A DNA stretch of 64,000 bases, from contig NW_003314380.1 of assembly GCF_000143415.4 (NCBI RefSeq), forward strand, positions 206,924-270,923. The letters are read 5' to 3'. Each line of letters starts with the position of its first letter. Position 1 is the stretch's first letter. A model generated the notes under the pieces. That model made no database searches, had not been told where the DNA came from, and saw only the letters and a list, made by a program, of their open reading frames with translations. This DNA comes from Selaginella moellendorffii. Its lineage: Eukaryota > Plantae > Lycopodiophyta. This document shows positions 467 to 35,271 of this stretch, one piece after another. Both the position numbers and the translations under genes were made by a program.

Positions 467-1700
467 TTAAAAGCTTCGACGTGAAAGACCTCCATCAGAG
501 ACTGCATCTTTCTCAGAGATGGCAAGCTTCGTGACATTGTCCCTCCACATTTGGCCTGCTTCTCCCATCATATCCTTCACTGCCTTGTCAACGATCGTGG
601 CATCTGGACTCGGTGGCAAGCGAGAGCCGATCTTCCAATGCTCCACAGCGAGCGCACAGTTAAGTGGCTGGTCGTACAAGAAAGGCCATCCAATCACGGG
701 GACTCCAAGCACGAACGATCGTCTCCAAAAGAGAATTTCATCCACAATGAGTGAGAAACGCACCCACGGAACGATGCTTGAGAATCTGTGTGGACGACAT
801 ATTAAGCAGGTAAAAGAAGAAGCTTACCTTGAGTTGAGGAGCCCAGAAAACAAACTTGCATTTGTCATAACTTGGATCTTAGAAAAGTTTTCGAAGCTCA
901 TTGTTGTCTGATCGTATCACCCAGGCTTCCAAAGGAGACGTAGATGACTGATTTGGACGGCTGCTCGTCCAGCCAGTCGAGGCAGCTCATATCTTCCATC
1001 CAAAAACCACACCTCTCCTGCTCGAGTTCGTACACTCCAACCTGCCCGTCGAATGCAAATGACGGAAGCAATGAACCGATTGGAAGAAACTGTGGTGTGT
1101 CTCTAGCAAGTTGGTCGAGCTGAGATGTTTCGTAGAAAGAGTTTATAAACACCGGTATACCCGAGAGTGAAGTTGGGATCTACGGTGTGAACTTCTTGAA
1201 GATGCAAAGGAAATTCCCATTCAGAAATTGGAGGGAGGCCGGGTACGAAATCTATGATCCTCGAAGGAATAATAAAAACTCAAGTGGAATAGATTAAGAA
1301 GTACCTTTTAGCGGCAGGAGTCCATTTTCCTTGAGCACAAGAAGACCATTCTGGATGCTAAGCCACGAAGCAGAAAATGTTGAAAGAGTCACCTTGCAAA
1401 TCAGGAACTGGCGAGCGACGCCTTGAAGGCTAGTAATTGCTATGTCGATGAGTATGCAAGACACTCTGGGCAGAGAATCATCTGCCATGATATCTCAAAT
1501 AATCTTGGGCACTGCCAGTTTGAGATTCTTCTCCAAGATAGCAGCAAACTGGAGCAGAACCGTAGTGACGGAGAAGGCTTCTGGAATGAAGGCATCCGGT
1601 AAGTAGACAAATCTCAAGTGCTGACCAGTAGCTTGTTGCTCAGTAGCTATAAAAGCCTCCTTTTTGTTTGAGATTAAGAAAGTGATGAAAAATCCATTGA
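467..1700 (-). pseudogene. UDP-glycosyltransferase (family 1 UGT) pseudogene, 5'-truncated
   Basis: Motifs [36 protein letters not shown] and GVPVIGWPFLYDQPLN (PSPG box) are spread over several frames. The HCGWN Trp codon is TGA at 738-740, there is a further stop at 898-900, and the 5' end is replaced by AT-rich DNA near 1700. Confidence 0.9.
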
Positions 1701-3615
1701 TGAAAAATCCATATAAAATCAAATTTATTCTATCTCAATTGCATTCTCTTCTTGCCATGTCATTGTCATCCACCAGTCAACGTCCCTTAGAACCTTCAAC
1801 ACTTACCTTTTCATCTTCTTGTATTAGGTAATATGCTAATTATAATACTATATTGAGATTAAATTTAATTTATCCATTCTTATATATATGATAATAGATT
1901 TATTAATTGGGGTTTATTACTTACCATTTCCATCTACTTTTGGTAAAACAAATGGCAATGCAATGTAGTTTCTTCTTTAATAGTGAAGAGCAATGAAGTT
2001 TAGGACTTAAAATTTTCTATCATGATTTTCAGGTATATATGAAAAATCTAGCAAGAGCTTAGAGATTATGTTAAGGCATAAGACTTTTTGATCTTTAGTA
2101 GGAAATTATATGGTAGTTCTAATAGTTAGACTGCTTTTCTTACTTGCACGATACATCTATTGGTTATTATTTAATTAGCAACTTCAAGAACAAATAGTCT
2201 AACCTTTCTTTTTAACATATTATTGTCTATTAATACATGAGTTTTTATTTTTCCAGTTGAGTTGGGGTCCCTACTAGTAATAATAATATGGGAAGGTATG
2301 CAAAAGTTTTGCAAACTAAAGAAGAATTATTATTCGAGGACACTTTATAAATTAATGTACAAATATTAAGAATTGAACTAAAATATCTTATAGATCAGAT
2401 TTTGTAAAAGATGGAGAAAAGATTAAAATCTTCATATGGGTTCAAAGAAAAAATAATACAATCTTTATTTACTTTATGAAATCTACTAATATATGCTTAA
2501 TTTTACTAATCATACCCAAAAACATTTGTTGTGAACTACCCCCACCTTTAAAGCTAATACCTTGAATGAAAGTTATTATTATTAACGAAAATATTCTTAC
2601 ATTCAAGATGTGTGGTTTTTGAATCATATTTGTTTTTATTAAATTTATTATTTAGTGTTTCAAATAATAACATTTCAACATATATTTATATCTTTTTCCC
2701 AATCCAATTAAACTTTTTTATTAGTAACTAAAGAGAAATTTAGACAAATATATTCATATTTTGTTCACTTGTAAGTTAAATATATATTTAGATGAGCTTA
2801 CTAATAATTTATTTTCTTTTGATTTACTTTAACTCATTTAAAAGCAAAATTGACTACTTACTTTATAAACTTACAATTGAAAGTGCATTATTAGTTAAGG
2901 TTTTCTAAAGCAAATTAAAAATTATAATTATGTATTTGACATGAAAACTCACTAGTTTTATTTTTAAAGTAGACTATTATTATTTCCATGGATATGGATT
3001 TAAATCTAGATCATCAAAAATAATATAACCATTATTTATTCTATGTGTTCTACCAGTATATGCCCAATTTTGCCAACCATACCATGAATCTTTTGTTATA
3101 AATTCTCCTTCACCTCTGAATGTTACACCTTGAAACTTAATAGAGTTAATTAAAATATCTTTGCATTCTTGGTATATTTTTCTATCATAATATTTTTTAT
3201 CAAATTGATCATTTAATTTTTCTCTCCAAATAATAGAATTACCATATAAATTACAGCTATTTAGAGCATTTAGCATATCTGGTTTCCAATCAACTAAAAA
3301 CAAAATTGCTAGAAATGAAAAAAAATCAATTATATACATACTTGGTTTACTTGTTAAGTTGAATAAATTTGCTGATGAGCTGACTAATATAATTTTAATT
3401 AAAAGAATAAAAATAATTACTAATTTAGTTGCCATTGTATATGCTATAATTTAATTCTGAAAAATTCAGTTTAAATACTGAATAGTCAAACTTCTTTTTC
3501 TGAGTTTCCAATTTCTTTTTCAGAGTTTTCAATGAAGTCAAGTAAAATTAAATAAATTAATTCTCTCCTATATCCTAAGCATAACGTATATTTTTACAAA
3601 AAAAAATAAAAAAAT
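1700..3615. other. Very AT-rich, CpG-poor island interrupting the UGT 5' end
   Basis: Abrupt composition change at about 1700, with a tandem gatgaaaaatccat at the junction. Composition returns to normal at about 3620. Confidence 0.6.
2980..3435 (-). CDS. Small putative secreted protein of unknown function (about 135 aa if the 48-nt intron 3294-3341 is spliced)
   Basis: Open 151-codon ORF in AT-rich DNA with a hydrophobic signal peptide (MATKLVIIFILLIKIILVSSS) and an in-frame gtatgt...ttttag intron. Confidence 0.6.
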   Translation of the reverse strand: MATKLVIIFILLIKIILVSSSANLFNLTSKPSMYIIDFFSFLAILFLVDWKPDMLNALNSCNLYGNSIIWREKLNDQFDKKYYDRKIYQECKDILINSIKFQGVTFRGEGEFITKDSWYGWQNWAYTGRTHRINNGYIIFDDLDLNPYPWK

Positions 3616-3645: not shown

Positions 3646-6600
3646 TCACAAGCTTGCTGTTGGTTTTCCAACGCTGTGCTCCATTTTCGCCCTCAATGCC
3701 TTCCTCCTCGCTAGAAAACCTCTTGCTGCTGCTTGTATTCTCGTGGCTGCGGTGACGCGTGATGACTCCTCGTGCTGCTCAACTTGCTGTATGGTTCGTT
3801 TTGCTACAAATCTCGCAGCTCGTTGTATCTTTGTTGCTGCGATGTGGTTTTGCCCCGGTGTGGCTTGAATTCGTATGCCCGAAGCAACGTAGTCTGCATG
3901 TTTTTGCTCCTGTCGAACTTGTAGTCTCAGTAAATATCTCCTCGTAGCTACTTGTATCTTTCTGGCCGCGATAACTTCCAGTTCTTGTGGCTTGTGAGCC
4001 TGTTCTTGTTCGTGTTTTTGCCTCGCTGCTTTCTTTCTTGCCAGAAACCCCCTTGCGACTGCCTGAAGTTTAGTGGCCGCCTCAACTTCTTCTAGCTTTT
4101 CAATTCCTCCAGTGGCTGCTCTCTCCTTGGCCAGCTTGGCCCTTACAAACGCTTGAATCTTTTTGGCAGCGGTTTCTTCTCGCTCGTGCTTCTGGAAGCT
4201 ACCCCGACTGGCTTTTGCTGCTTTCCTCCTCGCTATAAACCCCCTCGCAAGGGCTTGTATTTTAGTGGCTGCCTCTTCTTTTGAGTTCTGTTGCTCTTGT
4301 TCCTGGTTTTGGCCTTCACTGCCTCTGGCAAATCTCCTCCTCACCAAAAATCCCCTCACAAGAGCTTCGATTTTCGTGGCGGCACCACGTATGTAAACGC
4401 TTTGGATTTGCTTCTCTCTCTCAATTCGTAGTGTAAGAGGTAGACCCTGCGATCAGAGCACACAACATTCTTTGAGAGAGATTGAGAGGAAGATAAGAAC
4501 ATAAAACTCTCAACTGTTGGTCCGATCTTGTACAACGTGAACGTTTCCAGGAGCTGCTTGAATGGAATTCCTTTGTTTGGAACTCGAAAGCTCATAACCT
4601 CAAACTCAATCCTCAAGTACCTGGACGAGAAGCGGCAAAATAAATGAAAGCCTCTGATTGGCCAGCTTACCATTGCACGGTGGAGTTGTGTCGTCGTCCC
4701 AGAGGAACACCCAGAGCGTTCACAAAGTTTCGAAGTTTGTGCATTCCAATGTATCCCGAAGCTCTGCATTTTAGAAAAAGATAAAATGAGAAAGGTTAAA
4801 GACCACATTTCTTACTCTGGATCGAAGGGCTGCTGAGCCCATAGCGCTTTAAATGCAAGCAGGTGTTCAGGCGAGACCATAGAATTCTCGTTAACCAGCC
4901 CGAAAGTGATGGCATCCAGGATCAAGGCTACGAACAAGTTCATGAATATGAAACTCGATATCACCACCAGGCATACGAAATAGATGATTCCAGCAAACGG
5001 ATGACCACAGTCATTCCTCGCTAAAGAGTCTCCCTTTGTACACTTTGGCGAGTCCACCATCACGTCGACCATGATACAAGACCAGTTGTCAAGCGTGGAA
5101 ACCTGCAGCATAAGCTCTGAATACAACACAGGCGACTGTACCGAAGCTTACTTGGAAGACGGTAATGAAGGAGTTGACGAACGTTCGAAAGTTAAGCGTG
5201 GGACCAATGCAGGTTCCTTCTGCGACATGACTAAACATCTGGAAGCCAATACCAGAGAACGCGAACAGGAAGACACCGAGAAGAACCATGATCTCTCCCA
5301 TAGTCGGCAGGCATATGACCATAGTTCTCATGATCACCCGTGCTCTCGGTACATGAGGAATGATGCAGAAAACTCGAGCAATGTAAGCAAATCGACAAAC
5401 ATAACCTCTAGGTGTTCCTTTCTTTCCCATCAAGCCTGAAGCTGCCAATATAGATATCGCTGCTTCCATGTGTTTGGAGTGCTCGTATTTGTAAACTTCG
5501 AACTGCAAACACACACTTGAACCTCAAGCATTTATCTAAGAACGCACAGACCTCATCACCAAGAAATTTGATCAAGGACTCCAATAAAAAATACGTCGTA
5601 AGAGCAACGTGAGCTTTCTGGCGGCGCATAGAAACATAAGCCGGCTGGCCAGCGTAGTTCGTTGACAAGAGTGCAGCGTATCCCAACAGGCATATTATCA
5701 TAGTGTTTTGGTAGTGACGATTGCGGATAGCGTAAAAACATAGCTGCCGGACGTAATTCTTCGGTGGCCTCGGTAGCTTTGACGGTTCCAGCTTCTGGAT
5801 GATACGATTCATGTCTCGCCAGAGCTTCTGTCTCTCCGTTAAGAGCTTGGAGCCCGAGTTCTTCCCAAACTCGTTGATAAAAACTCCGATAAACACCCGG
5901 ACTATGAAAAATCCTCCACATATGCAAAACGCCACGAAGAAAATGGCATAAGCCGGACTGTTGTCCCGTTGCGGCTGCTTGTTTTCGCCAACGATATCCA
6001 TCACGGGGTATAGCCAGTTTGTAACCCAGTTGTCGAAAGTCGAGCAAACGAATAAAGAGAGGAAGGCATTACCAATGCTGTCAAAGTGGAAAGTAGGATT
6101 TGTCCAGGCCCGTGGAACATATATTCCGATGTTGTTGTAGTAATGGCCAGTGCAATAAGCTCGATGAGTAATAGTAGCATCGTTGCACGAGTAAAGAAGG
6201 CCCCTGAATAACTGGACACCGATAGAGCCGAAAACCACGAAGATGAGGAACGTAAACAACAGAACGGCCACTATAGCTGGAACAGTCTTGACGAGATTCG
6301 ACATCAAGCTTTTGAGTTCGCCAAAGCGACAGATGAACCGAAATGGTCGCAGTGCCGTCAATGCATGTATAGCTCGTTGAGAGTTCTCGCTCCAAGTAGC
6401 AAGATTGAGTGCGTCGATGATCAGAAGAAAAAGTTCCAGGATGTTGTAGGGGTCGTTAAAGACTGCACTGGGCGAAGATACGAAGCCTTGAACAAAAACT
6501 CTGAGAGAAAACTCTACAAGGAAGACCTGCGAAAGACCCGTGTGCTAATGTGAAGTTCACAAACACGGAGAGAAACATACTAACCACGAACACAAGCTTG

Positions 6601-31324: not shown

Positions 31325-32252
31325 TCATGCGTAGTCTCCTAGTCGAGCACCGGCTACCATCCAGCAGTCTTTATAAGGACCATTGACGACCTGCGATGGT
31401 TATATTCATTTGTTAAGAAATGAGACATCAATCCAAAGAGCATTACTCGTTGCAGAGAAAACGTGAATGCCGCCGTCCTTGTCTCTCCGGTTGTTGTCTT
31501 GAATCTCACTTCAATCGCTTGAACAGCTCTCCTCTCACCTCGAAACACCATAGGAGAAAGCACCTGACATGCAAGTTCCACAGAAATAAACGACATAATA
31601 AAAGGATTTTACCTTCCAGTCGAGGCAATTCACCATTGGGACATAGCTGGTGTACTTGAAAGACTCTATAAACTCTTGACAAGTCAGCACCCTTGCTGAG
31701 GCATCCCAAGCTCTAGCTCTTGGCTGGAAAGAATTTTGAGAACTTGTCATAGACAGCACGAACTCTACCTTGTCATCCGGAATTTCGTCGTATTGATAAG
31801 GCAATGGCCTCATCGCGAAATCGAAAGCCGTCTTGATCCCACTGTCCTCCTCAGGCCAGTCATTCCGCATCAACGCATCCATCTAGAACCTCCCATTCAT
31901 CGCAAATTTCGTGAGCAGAGAAAGGCGGCAGCACCTGAGCTTTCACCACCGTACTTGGCGGCATCAGCGGCGTCGGCTTGCGATTCTCCAGCGGCCACGA
32001 ATGGCCCGACGTGTTCACGAAGCGCATGAAATCGGACGCCAGATTGTCCTTCCCTGCTGTGCGCGCCATCGAAAATGCGCTGAGAAAGGAAATACCAGTC
32101 CGATCGATCTTACCAGGCATTGCGAGCGCCAGACCGACGGGATTTCGACGAGTTCCTCCCGAAATATCCACCCGGCGCCAGAGAACCGATGGAGCTCGTG
32201 GAAATCCCGCGGAGAGAGACGCGAGCGCGCCATCGCCAAGAGCTCTCCCCAT
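31325..32252 (-). CDS. Conserved green-lineage protein, DUF4864-like, probable plastid transit peptide, 5 exons
   Basis: Spliced product reads PSTVVKAQ-MDALMRNDWPEEDSGIKTAFDFA...AVQAIEV...FTFSLQR-VVNGPYKDCWMVAGARLGDYA*. Family assigned from memory of the AQ.DAL..ND and CW motifs. Confidence 0.65.
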
Positions 32253-32358
32253 ATCCACAAGAGATGGGACAAATAGGGTTTATGGTATGAGTTCCTATAG
32301 TTGGAAAGTATCGTTAGAGCCCTAAAAACAGAGGGTTTACTATACTCGGAAAGTGCCG

Positions 32359-33171
32359 TTATGACATGTTTACGAAAACAGGTTCCACGTAAGTGACAAA
32401 GCATATGGCCGCTAGGGCAGTCCCAAAGCCTTGTTCTACCTCGCTCTCTTGGATCATGAAATCCTCTTCGAAAACTTCGTAGTCCTCTTGATCGAATCGC
32501 CGCTTGAAAATGCCCTCCAGATCCTTCTGGAGGATTCTCCTGGCCTCCGATTCTCTGGCGTGGCCACTGTATTCCGCCGCATAGCCACCGATCACTGCGT
32601 TGTCTCGCTTTCTTCGAATCTGTGGATCCAAAGCTTTCAATGGGATCGAAGTTCCTGGAGAAAGCAGAGTGATTTCTTGCCTGAATGCGGGCAACTCCAG
32701 CCGTGATTCTGTCTCCCTTGACACCATTCATACTCGCCATGATCGCTTCCATCACCGCTCCATGCCGGAAGAATGGCTTTGCTTCATGGAACTCGATCTT
32801 GGAGGATTCCGGAGGGATCACTGACGAGTACTGCGTGATGTTAAAATCCATGATCCCTGGAAGAACGCGTGTCAGCAACAATCCAATCGAAAGAGGGAAA
32901 GCATACCAGCCGATTCCAACGCTAGATCATACGATCCAGTCTCCCAGGGATCGGCACCATCGCCAGCATCCGTCTGGCCAAAGCCCTTCACCATGAAGTA
33001 ATGCTTGGGAATCCGCGAGCCAAACAAAACCCCGTGCCCGCCGGCGACCAGCTCCATGAAATTCAGCTTCATCGCCTCCTCCCTCGAATGCGCGTGCCGC
33101 AATCCCAAGTTCTTGGGCAGCGGCTGGACATTATGCTTGGAATCCATCGATTCCAGCCCCTGCTGCGCCAT
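32359..33171 (-). CDS. Pyruvoyl-dependent arginine decarboxylase proenzyme (PdaD/AaxB family), 3 exons
   Basis: RIPKHYFMVKGFG...SYDLALESAG-IMDFNITQYSSVIPP (self-cleavage S-S site)...HGAVMEAIMA...ITAGV...GGYAAEY...FGTALAAICF. Introns at 32857-32906 (GT-AG) and 32620-32680 (GC-AG). Confidence 0.88.
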
Positions 33172-33399
33172 TTCCCTGCAAAAATTCACACACAAATCTA
33201 AAGAGGCTAGATCCTCGCGGAAAAATCGACAAGAGAGCAAGCAAATCGATCGACCAAACCTTGTGGAAGAATCGACAAGAAAAGCAAAACGATCGATCCC
33301 AAAACCTCAAAACGTTCCTCGTTAAATAATCTTCTCTCTTTCTCTCTCCAACAAGTGTCCATTGGACAACAGGAGCCACGTGTCAAACAATGCGCTGAG

Positions 33400-35271
33400 T
33401 CAGCAAGCACCAATATTCGTGTTAGCCAGGAGGACGTATGCCGCGCCATCGTCTGGATGTAGATCTAGAGCTCCAATCGCTGCCCTAGCGCCGCGCTCGC
33501 GATCGCGGTAGCTCCTGGAAGCACCCAGCAAGCATCGCCACTCCAGGACATTGGGAACAAAGGGCATGCTCGCGATCAGCTCCTCGGCCTCGTCTAGATG
33601 CCCAGCGCGGCACAGCAGATCGACAACGCAGGTGTAATGCGGCTTCCTCGCGCCCAGATTGAAATCCATCGCCATCGACACGAAGATCGATCGGCACAGC
33701 GCGAGCTTGCCGGCGTGGACGCACGCCAGCAGCGCGAACGAGAAGCAAATCTCGTCGGGGCGGACGAGCGCTTTCATCGCATCAAAGCTCTCTAGGGTTT
33801 GAGCGTAGTGGCCGTTCTGGGCGTGGACGACGACGATCGCTGCCCACGCGATCGTGTCGGGCTCTGGTATTCGATCGAAAATCCGCTTCGCGAGGTCGAG
33901 GTCGCCGCTCTGCGCGTAGCCGACGAGCATCGCCGTCCAGGAGACGACGCTTCGCTCCGGCATGGAATCCAGAAGAGCTTTGCTCGTTTCTATTTGCCCT
34001 AATTGGGCATTTGCGGCAATGAGAGTGTTCCAAGAGATTAAATTGTGCTGTGGCATTGTGAGAAATATCCAGTGGGCGTTCTCTACTTGACAACTTTGTG
34101 AATATGCTGCTAGCATGGCGTTCCACGACACTAGGTTTTTCATGGGCATGAAATCAAACAAGTGTTTAGCCTTTACCAAATGCCCGTTTTGGGCATATGC
34201 TGAGATCATGGCTGTGGAGCTAATAACATTCTTCTCCGGAAGAGATTCATAAAGATGCTCGGCATTTTCTAGGTCATCGTCTTGGGAGTAGGCAGTTATC
34301 ATAGCGGTGGCAGAGACTAGATTTTGCTCCGGCATTCGATCGAAGAGTCGCTGGCACTCGCCACGATGCCCGCTCTGGGCGTATGATACGAGCATCGCGT
34401 TCCAGGAAATTAGGGTTCTATGTGGCATTCGAGCAAATATTTCCGAGGCCTCGGCCAGATTCCCGCTCTGGCCGTAGGCAACGATCATCGCGGTCTGGGA
34501 GATCACGTCGTGCTCCGGCATGGAATCGAAGGCGTCCTTGGCCAGATCGAGCTTTCCCTCGTTCGCGTAGCCCGAGAGCATCGCATTCCACGAGACGAGG
34601 TTTCTTTCTTCCATGGCGTCAAATATTTGCTTCGCCCTCTCGATCTGGCCGTTCTGCGCGTAGGCCGCGAGGATCGCTGTCCTGGAGATGAGATTCGGCT
34701 CTGGAATGCTGTCGAAGAGCTGGATCGCTTGCGCCAGATCTCCCTCCTGCGAGAATTCGGCCAGGAGTGCCGTTGTTGACACCGAATCCCACTCCGGCAT
34801 TTCATCAAAGAGCTGCTTGGCTCGATCCAGATGAGCGTTCTGAGCCAGCGTCGCGACCACCGCCGTCCACGACACGAGATCTCTCAGCGGCATCGCGTCG
34901 AAAATTCTCAGTGCCTCCTCCGGATTGCCGTCCCTCCCGATCGCGGTGATGAGCGTGTTCCACGACACAACGTTCTTGGAGGGGAATCTCGAGAAGAAAG
35001 CCCTGGCGTCGTCGATCCGGCCGTGGTGCGCGTAGGCCGCGAGCATCGCGTTCCAGGTAGCGAGATTCCGGAGCGGCATTTCGTCGAAGAGATTCTTGGC
35101 ACTGACGACATCGCCCATCCGGGCGTAAGCCGTGATCATGAACACCCATGAGAAGGAGTCCTTGATCTGGATCCGATCGAATACCCGTCGCGCCTGGTGG
35201 AGATCTCCCCTCTTTCCCAGCAGCTCGATCAGCTTATTGCTCGCGAAGGTATCGTGGGAAATATTGCTCAT
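33400..35271 (-). CDS. PLS-class pentatricopeptide repeat protein with E domain (no DYW), intronless
   Basis: Tandem 31-aa repeats (A..LFD.MP.RNLVSW.AML.AYAQ.G), then HYTCVVDLLCRAG...MPFVP and a truncated E domain ending AYVLLAN. Confidence 0.95.
   Translation of the reverse strand: MSNISHDTFASNKLIELLGKRGDLHQARRVFDRIQIKDSFSWVFMITAYARMGDVVSAKNLFDEMPLRNLATWNAMLAAYAHHGRIDDARAFFSRFPSKNVVSWNTLITAIGRDGNPEEALRIFDAMPLRDLVSWTAVVATLAQNAHLDRAKQLFDEMPEWDSVSTTALLAEFSQEGDLAQAIQLFDSIPEPNLISRTAILAAYAQNGQIERAKQIFDAMEERNLVSWNAMLSGYANEGKLDLAKDAFDSMPEHDVISQTAMIVAYGQSGNLAEASEIFARMPHRTLISWNAMLVSYAQSGHRGECQRLFDRMPEQNLVSATAMITAYSQDDDLENAEHLYESLPEKNVISSTAMISAYAQNGHLVKAKHLFDFMPMKNLVSWNAMLAAYSQSCQVENAHWIFLTMPQHNLISWNTLIAANAQLGQIETSKALLDSMPERSVVSWTAMLVGYAQSGDLDLAKRIFDRIPEPDTIAWAAIVVVHAQNGHYAQTLESFDAMKALVRPDEICFSFALLACVHAGKLALCRSIFVSMAMDFNLGARKPHYTCVVDLLCRAGHLDEAEELIASMPFVPNVLEWRCLLGASRSYRDRERGARAAIGALDLHPDDGAAYVLLANTNIGAC

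Follow-up and report, generated by a model that had tools for sequence, protein, structure and literature searches.

Does a lycophyte possess, next to its canonical arginine decarboxylase (ADC), a second enzyme for making agmatine, and if so, from where was it obtained? In plant polyamine work, the PLP-dependent ADC (plus ODC) is treated as the only entry into putrescine. The question is raised by a locus in a window of 64,000 nucleotides of Selaginella moellendorffii (contig NW_003314380.1; all positions below are those of this window, unless a locus of another organism is named). An earlier note, made from the letters alone, had recognized there a gene for a pyruvoyl-dependent arginine decarboxylase, spanning 32359-33171, and had taken it for an unrecognized second route to agmatine, gained by horizontal gene transfer (HGT) or retained from algal ancestors. 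It is now confirmed that 33171..32359, on the minus strand, is a real, transcribed three-exon gene of the PvlArgDC family in S. moellendorffii, and the span first proposed coincides exactly with its stop codon and its first ATG. Very probably, this is a nuclear Selaginella gene for a self-processing pyruvoyl decarboxylase. That the enzyme makes agmatine from L-arginine is, judging from sequence comparison, likely.

The gene is read entirely from the minus strand. Exon 1 (33171..32907, 265 nt) encodes an N-terminal extension and the start of the PvlArgDC domain. It opens with the first ATG (Met1) at 33171, while a second in-frame ATG (Met9), the start adopted in RefSeq, lies at 33147. Intron 1 (32906..32857, 50 nt) is of the GT-AG type and interrupts the Gly codon of SA/GI in phase 1. 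It is followed by exon 2 (32856..32681, 176 nt), which includes the HGAVME block, and by intron 2 (32680..32620, 61 nt), a phase 0 intron of the GC-AG type (donor CAG/GCAAGA) placed after ARIQ. Exon 3 (32619..32359, 261 nt with the stop codon TAA at 32361-32359) contributes the GGYAAEY block and the C-terminal beta strands. The 5' UTR and proximal promoter occupy 33172..33341, with transcript contigs that are colinear to 33288 (run X15) and 33341 (run X1). The 3' UTR covers at least 32200..32358; the contig from X15 is colinear past 32200, and contigs of this kind cannot show transcript ends. After splicing the product measures 233 aa, or 225 aa if translation starts at Met9, and the shorter model is 100% identical to the RefSeq "uncharacterized protein LOC112341617". 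A search with the exon 2 region also returned an older JGI model, SELMODRAFT_429737, for which the UniRef name is arginine decarboxylase.

Both spliceosomal introns that had been read from the genomic letters were borne out, although for the second one the earlier reading had overlooked that the donor is GC and not GT. In a protein comparison all homologues read GxGRxQ and then IRRK without a gap, and the GC-AG model is thereby supported. A GT donor at 32695, which would yield ITAG/IRRK and a protein of 229 aa, was rejected: homologues keep the five residues GVxRxQ, and the joint observed in transcripts is 32619/32681. The differing intron 2 of the older JGI model was ruled out by the same homologue residues and the same joint. 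The GC donor occurs only in Selaginella; Sphagnum, Adiantum and Calypogeia have GT at this place.

Transcription was followed in contigs from public runs, aligned to 32200-33400 of the window (1201 letters). Spliced contigs come from the runs X2, X4 and X15, which represent three studies, and although the library type of the runs was guessed, the spliced form is in itself evidence of RNA. The 61-nt skip of intron 2 is present in contigs of all three; its borders read CT..GC on the plus strand, that is, GC..AG on the strand of the gene. The 50-nt skip of intron 1 is seen in X4 and X15, and a single X15 contig of 1443 nt, aligned over 32200..33288, has both introns removed. In X2 and X4, contigs that retain intron 2 (32604-32710) coexist with spliced ones, and the contig depths are unable to rank the two forms. 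Retention of intron 2 would shift the reading frame. The runs also differ in their alleles. In X4, a 10-nt deletion at 33169 removes the first ATG, and therefore Met9 (33147) is the start that is common to both forms; the X4 sequence is probably another haplotype or a related accession. Five of the six coding differences between runs are synonymous. The X4 contig also has a loose end at 33199; considered as a further splice, it turned out to be the same 5' UTR in a diverged allele.

Membership of the PvlArgDC family, which the earlier note had derived from motifs, is upheld by the Pfam profile. The full-length RefSeq protein matches PF01862 with 113.5 bits, against a cut-off of 22.7, over profile positions 1-161 of 161. 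The exon pieces match it colinearly at positions 1-28, 30-85 (exon 2, with an E-value of 1e-12) and 92-161. Every motif listed from the raw sequence is found in the 233-aa product, and the N-terminal extension before the Pfam domain, first estimated at about 45 aa, measures 45 aa from Met9 and 53 aa from Met1. A phmmer search against the PDB sequences gave no match other than the PvlArgDC of Methanocaldococcus jannaschii. An AlphaFold2 model, built on an alignment with 34 relatives, reached a pLDDT of 87.3 and a pTM of 0.80. With Foldseek it retrieved from the PDB the chains of the M. jannaschii enzyme (2qqd, 1n2m, 1mt1; TMt 0.82-0.87, rmsd 2.1-2.3 A), and no other fold was matched in the PDB at E <= 0.001.

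The comparison with M. jannaschii PdaD (PDB 1MT1, 1N13, 1N2M, 2QQC, 2QQD), the characterized enzyme, thus extends from Pfam family and predicted fold to the active site. Five residues of the archaeal protein, Asp35, Asn47, Ser52, Ser53 and Glu109, align to identical residues of the plant protein, namely (in the 233-aa numbering) Asp82 (codon 32928-32926, exon 1), Asn94 (32842-32840, exon 2), Ser99 and Ser100 (32827-32822, exon 2) and Glu163 (32574-32572, exon 3). These equivalences were fixed with the mutant PDB chains 1n2m (S53A) and 2qqd (N47A). The Ser-Ser site suspected from the letters alone is therefore placed at Ser99-Ser100 as the predicted position of self-cleavage. All 34 aligned relatives have the Asn and the pyruvoyl Ser, and the Glu is conserved in nearly all of them. 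We take Asp35 to be the guanidinium ligand in the archaeal structures and Asn47 and Glu109 to act in processing and in catalysis, respectively, and we apply these roles to Asp82, Asn94 and Glu163. The two proteins differ in other respects. The Selaginella protein has 225-233 aa instead of 165 aa and is only about 23% identical to its archaeal counterpart; furthermore, it is encoded by a nuclear gene with introns and carries an N-terminal extension of 45-53 aa that is conserved among land plants.

On this basis a mechanism can be proposed. By homology with the M. jannaschii enzyme, a proenzyme of about 25 kDa would cut itself between Ser99 and Ser100, with Asn94 assisting. Cleavage would release a beta chain of about 10 kDa and an alpha chain of about 15 kDa (the masses calculated for the predicted chains are 10.0 and 15.2 kDa), and Ser100, at the new N-terminus of the alpha chain, would become the pyruvoyl group. 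Asp82 would then hold the guanidinium group of the substrate, and Glu163 would give a proton once CO2 has left.

It could be argued that the Selaginella gene is an expressed but decaying relic, the enzyme of which is inactive. The GC donor of intron 2 and the unspliced contigs would fit such a state, as would the fact that the protein is devoid of the long N-terminal leader found in bryophyte and fern orthologues. However, the reading frame is unbroken and none of the key residues has been lost; the coding variants are almost all synonymous; the terminal branch of Selaginella in the tree discussed below is short (0.28); and, beside the fully spliced X15 contig, single joints were found in two more runs. 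Decay is thus very improbable, and a functional gene is the preferred reading.

Next comes the question of where the gene belongs. The family is mainly prokaryotic and its nearest non-plant relatives are bacterial, at about 50% identity, so that one could suspect a bacterial contaminant, or a gene that Selaginella alone acquired recently by horizontal transfer. The genomic surroundings, described earlier as ordinary plant genes, speak against this. The upstream neighbor is a 623-aa PPR gene with its stop codon at 33402-33400, only 229 nt from the start of the decarboxylase gene, and the remaining genes of the window are likewise plant-type (a kinase/U-box protein, PTPA and an EDR1/CTR1-like protein). 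The argument that the introns weigh against contamination holds as well, since they are removed in transcripts and their positions are shared with other land plants, as set out below.

Homologues are present in liverworts (Marchantia polymorpha, in which the protein is named arginine decarboxylase, Riccia fluitans and Calypogeia fissa), in the moss Sphagnum compactum, in the ferns Adiantum nelumboides and Pteridium aquilinum, and in the trebouxiophytes Botryococcus braunii, Coccomyxa viridis, Coccomyxa elongata and [Myrmecia] bisecta. A further one has the EukProt gene ID SM000007S20976, which we read as Spirogloea, a streptophyte alga. The Selaginella protein is 63-68% identical to the bryophyte orthologues. 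Database searches that needed shared words and a length window returned no homologues among seed-plant, hornwort or Physcomitrium proteins, and absence from these three is likely. Prokaryotic relatives, with 41-54% identity over the whole domain, occur in Sorangium, Dethiosulfatarculus, Desulfarculaceae, Ignavibacteriae, Alicyclobacillus, Omnitrophota, several MAGs and many Methanothrix; cyanobacteria are not among the named prokaryotic matches. The ultimate source of the gene is apparently prokaryotic and not the plastid ancestor.

A careful maximum likelihood tree of 52 rows (LG+C20 PMSF) resolves a green-lineage clade with supports of 95/82, consisting of nine named sequences and six unnamed ones with N-terminal extensions. 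Within it, the land plants, including the ferns, are grouped at 97/89, and Selaginella is placed with the bryophytes at 100/97; the branching order of chlorophytes and streptophyte algae is left without resolution. The sister of the green clade is a bacterial clade of Sorangium and metagenomic sequences (96/84), and the two clades lie within a wider set of prokaryotic sequences. In an AU test, a topology in which the nine named eukaryotes alone are held together was not rejected (p 0.25).

The intron positions, as independent evidence, tell the same story. Sphagnum, Adiantum and Calypogeia, that is, a moss, a fern and a leafy liverwort, each possess exactly two introns in the domain, with positions and phases as in Selaginella: one in phase 1 in the Gly codon of A/GI and one in phase 0 after R(I/M/V)Q. 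The middle exon has 176 nt in these three species too. It follows that the gene and its introns were present in the last common ancestor of land plants. Contamination and recent HGT are refuted by the shared introns and the tree, and between the two origins suggested in the earlier note, retention is favored and a recent transfer into Selaginella falls. The Riccia gene is wholly intronless (501-1421 of its locus) and the Marchantia gene is without an intron in the domain, which looks like a secondary loss in Marchantiopsida. The history would then most likely be as follows: a gene derived from prokaryotes would already have been present in green algae and been passed vertically to land plants; its two introns would have been acquired by the last common ancestor of land plants and lost again in marchantiopsid liverworts; and the gene would have been lost, or is at least not found, in seed plants.

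The orthologues differ in what precedes the domain. Bryophytes, ferns and Spirogloea have leaders of 85-190 aa that are acid-poor, with a Ser/Thr fraction of 0.12-0.34, and most of these begin with MA or MS; they look like plastid transit peptides. The leaders of Botryococcus and of one unnamed relative are rich in Lys and Glu instead. Selaginella has a pre-domain segment of 35-45 aa (LPxxLxL(K/R)H....EEAMxLN..EL..GG.G) in common with bryophytes, and no long leader. An upstream exon for a transit peptide was considered for Selaginella and rejected, since the contigs follow the genome without a break to 33288 and 33341 and the stop codon of the PPR gene is so close. Since a leader resembling a transit peptide is missing, the Selaginella protein is probably cytosolic, and the sequences thus suggest a plastid location in bryophytes and a cytosolic one in Selaginella. 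In Marchantia (1501-1696 of its locus), the annotated model of 373 aa begins with a further 5' exon (65 aa), separated by a 178-nt intron from the part that holds an internal MAAATAVVG. The latter looks like the real start of the transit peptide, and the 373-aa model may be over-extended.

A reservation concerns the substrate. Neither of the NCBIfam equivalogs is reached: the Selaginella protein scores 58.2 against a cut-off of 106.95 for TIGR00286 and 49.6 against 207 for NF009064, and the plant, algal, Sorangium, Methanothrix and Dethiosulfatarculus relatives likewise stay below both. The protein is therefore filed in a separate PvlArgDC subfamily, and not as a proven functional equivalent of the classical enzymes. 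We infer catalysis by homology and, as we know of no characterized member of this subfamily, the specificity for arginine as well. The closest prokaryotic group, recognizable by DPWETG(S/A)Y, has the same motifs as Selaginella and is its sister or near-sister in the tree; its members bear the NCBI name pyruvoyl-dependent arginine decarboxylase and, as far as could be found, are uncharacterized too. They differ from the plant gene in being intronless and in that many of them have leaders resembling signal peptides.

Such leaders, defined by a basic N-terminus, a hydrophobic core of 12 residues (Kyte-Doolittle mean > 2.4) and an AxA-type end, were seen in 11 of the 14 prokaryotic members retrieved (L001, L003, L005-L010 and L012-L014). 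Many Methanothrix copies are among the carriers, and so are MAGs labelled as Omnitrophota, Clostridia, Actinomycetes and Acidobacteriota. To our knowledge, no exported pyruvoyl arginine decarboxylase has been described. The gene contexts are diverse. L003, from an Omnitrophota MAG, has a gene for a pyruvoyl histidine decarboxylase (PF02329, 266 bits) at 479-1465 (+), and 39 nt further on PvlArgDC follows at 1504-2190 (+), so that two self-processing decarboxylases stand in tandem on the same strand. In a gammaproteobacterial MAG (L020), PvlArgDC at 3971-4549 (+) is separated by 17 nt from an APC-family amino-acid permease at 4566-5822 (+). A permease of the Trp/Tyr type lies upstream of the homologue in a Clostridia MAG (L008), and a gene for a C69 dipeptidase follows in L006, with homologous ORFs in L005 and L008. 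Apart from this C69 peptidase and the synteny among Methanothrix copies, no neighbors recur across the prokaryotic loci, and at the loci examined none of the copies has agmatinase, AIH or spermidine synthase beside it. The prokaryotic context fits a role as an amino-acid decarboxylase, not specifically one in polyamine biosynthesis.

These contexts keep alive the reading that the protein has the same fold and self-processing but another job, be it the decarboxylation of a different basic or modified amino acid, or a part in catabolism, pH homeostasis or specialized amine metabolism in place of polyamine biosynthesis. In favor of this can further be counted the scores below both equivalog cut-offs, the position of the subfamily in trees, well apart from the classical PdaD-type sequences, the Sec-signal-like leaders of the prokaryotic members, the company of a tandem pyruvoyl histidine decarboxylase, permeases and a C69 dipeptidase in place of agmatinase or spermidine synthase, and the canonical ADC already present in these plants. 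Nevertheless, the Asp equivalent to Asp35 of M. jannaschii is kept in nearly all green-lineage sequences, and arginine decarboxylation is the only activity that we know of for PF01862. Moreover, the arginine-specific AaxB/AaxC pair of Chlamydia likewise combines a decarboxylase gene with that of a permease beside it. Another job is rather unlikely, and arginine decarboxylation is retained as the preferred function.

AaxB itself belongs to the PvlArgDC family and has a cleavage site of the Thr/Ser-Ser type. It is the pyruvoyl ADC of the AaxABC arginine/agmatine system, which, with its antiporter, is reminiscent of acid resistance systems. Its layout recurs in L020, a likeness in gene arrangement; the plant gene is without an adjacent antiporter partner. 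Precedent for a pyruvoyl ADC in eukaryotes is provided by two other enzymes, both with activity shown experimentally: SpeDA of Nannochloropsis and Tribonema, with the AdoMetDC fold (PMC10407285), and Ao-ADC1 of Aspergillus oryzae, with the PSD fold (PMC12904898). Like the Selaginella gene, these are intron-containing eukaryotic genes of prokaryotic type, and a pyruvoyl cofactor generated by the protein itself would be a feature common to all three. Unlike the Selaginella protein, which is known by its sequence, they have been assayed for agmatine formation, and their folds are unrelated to its own. A 'prokaryotic ADC' of duckweed was considered as a relative and set aside, being an AAT-fold Orn/Lys/Arg decarboxylase unrelated to PvlArgDC.

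How does such an enzyme relate to the canonical plant ADC? The latter, a PLP-dependent SpeA-type protein of about 700 aa with an ADC-box in the 5' UTR of its gene, presumably catalyzes the same reaction, with an unrelated fold and cofactor, and is present in seed plants. Whether the Selaginella genome keeps it can be answered from a recent preprint: a canonical ADC with the 5'-UTR ADC-box is retained in M. polymorpha and in nine Selaginella species, S. moellendorffii among them (10.64898/2026.04.30.721942). A second route to agmatine, as first proposed, is thus plausible in the sense that the pyruvoyl enzyme would be a cofactor-independent source alongside the PLP-dependent one. That preprint of 2026 describes the editing of 'the' ADC gene in Marchantia and a comparison of nine ADC genes from Selaginella, and a pyruvoyl enzyme goes unmentioned there (10.64898/2026.04.30.721942).

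A wider proposal can be made, tentatively and with more doubt than confidence. Seedless land plants and some green algae may run a PLP-independent ADC parallel to the canonical one, in the plastid of bryophytes and ferns and, after a move, in the cytosol of Selaginella. The two would be non-redundant, either in agmatine and polyamine pools or in a specialized product derived from agmatine, and the pyruvoyl enzyme would have been discarded in the ancestor of seed plants. If this were true, current plant polyamine models, and the ADC knock-down or ADC-box phenotypes of Marchantia, would be incomplete.

As to novelty, full-text searches for PF01862 enzymes of plants or green algae brought up no paper, and in this sense the gene had indeed gone unrecognized. 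On the other hand, seedless land plants and green algae carry it widely, and the automatic name "arginine decarboxylase" is already attached to the Marchantia protein and to UniRef entries for Selaginella, Riccia and Coccomyxa. The earlier note had conceded that a family widespread and annotated across land plants would deprive the finding of its novelty; this is partly so, in that seedless plants carry the gene under automatic names, with no seed-plant copy found. The novelty is limited accordingly: what is new is an uncharacterized branch, in eukaryotes, of a family already known, and no enzyme of a new type. The polyamine pathway maps of seedless plants could gain a second ADC from it. As a second candidate ADC that is expressed and conserved, the enzyme of liverworts, Sphagnum, lycophytes, ferns and green algae could confound genetics in these models. 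Furthermore, the gene is a clean example of an enzyme of prokaryotic type that the green lineage already possessed before the ancestor of land plants arose and retained thereafter, until seed plants apparently lost it.

Some minor features of the locus may be added. The promoter region between the PPR stop codon and the decarboxylase start is very compact, and within these 229 nt a G-box-like CACGTG (33382-33377) and a CCAAT (33365-33361) can be read from the sequence. On the other side of the gene, the X15 contig extends at least 465 nt beyond 32200, and transcript contigs of other runs, for example one of 1185 nt from X1, stop at about 32265, just 3' of the gene. Two ORFs on the minus strand, 31535-31882 and 31860-32258, are without a Pfam match. 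Two readings offer themselves for the region 31535-32265: a long 3' UTR, or an unannotated neighbor immediately adjoining the gene.
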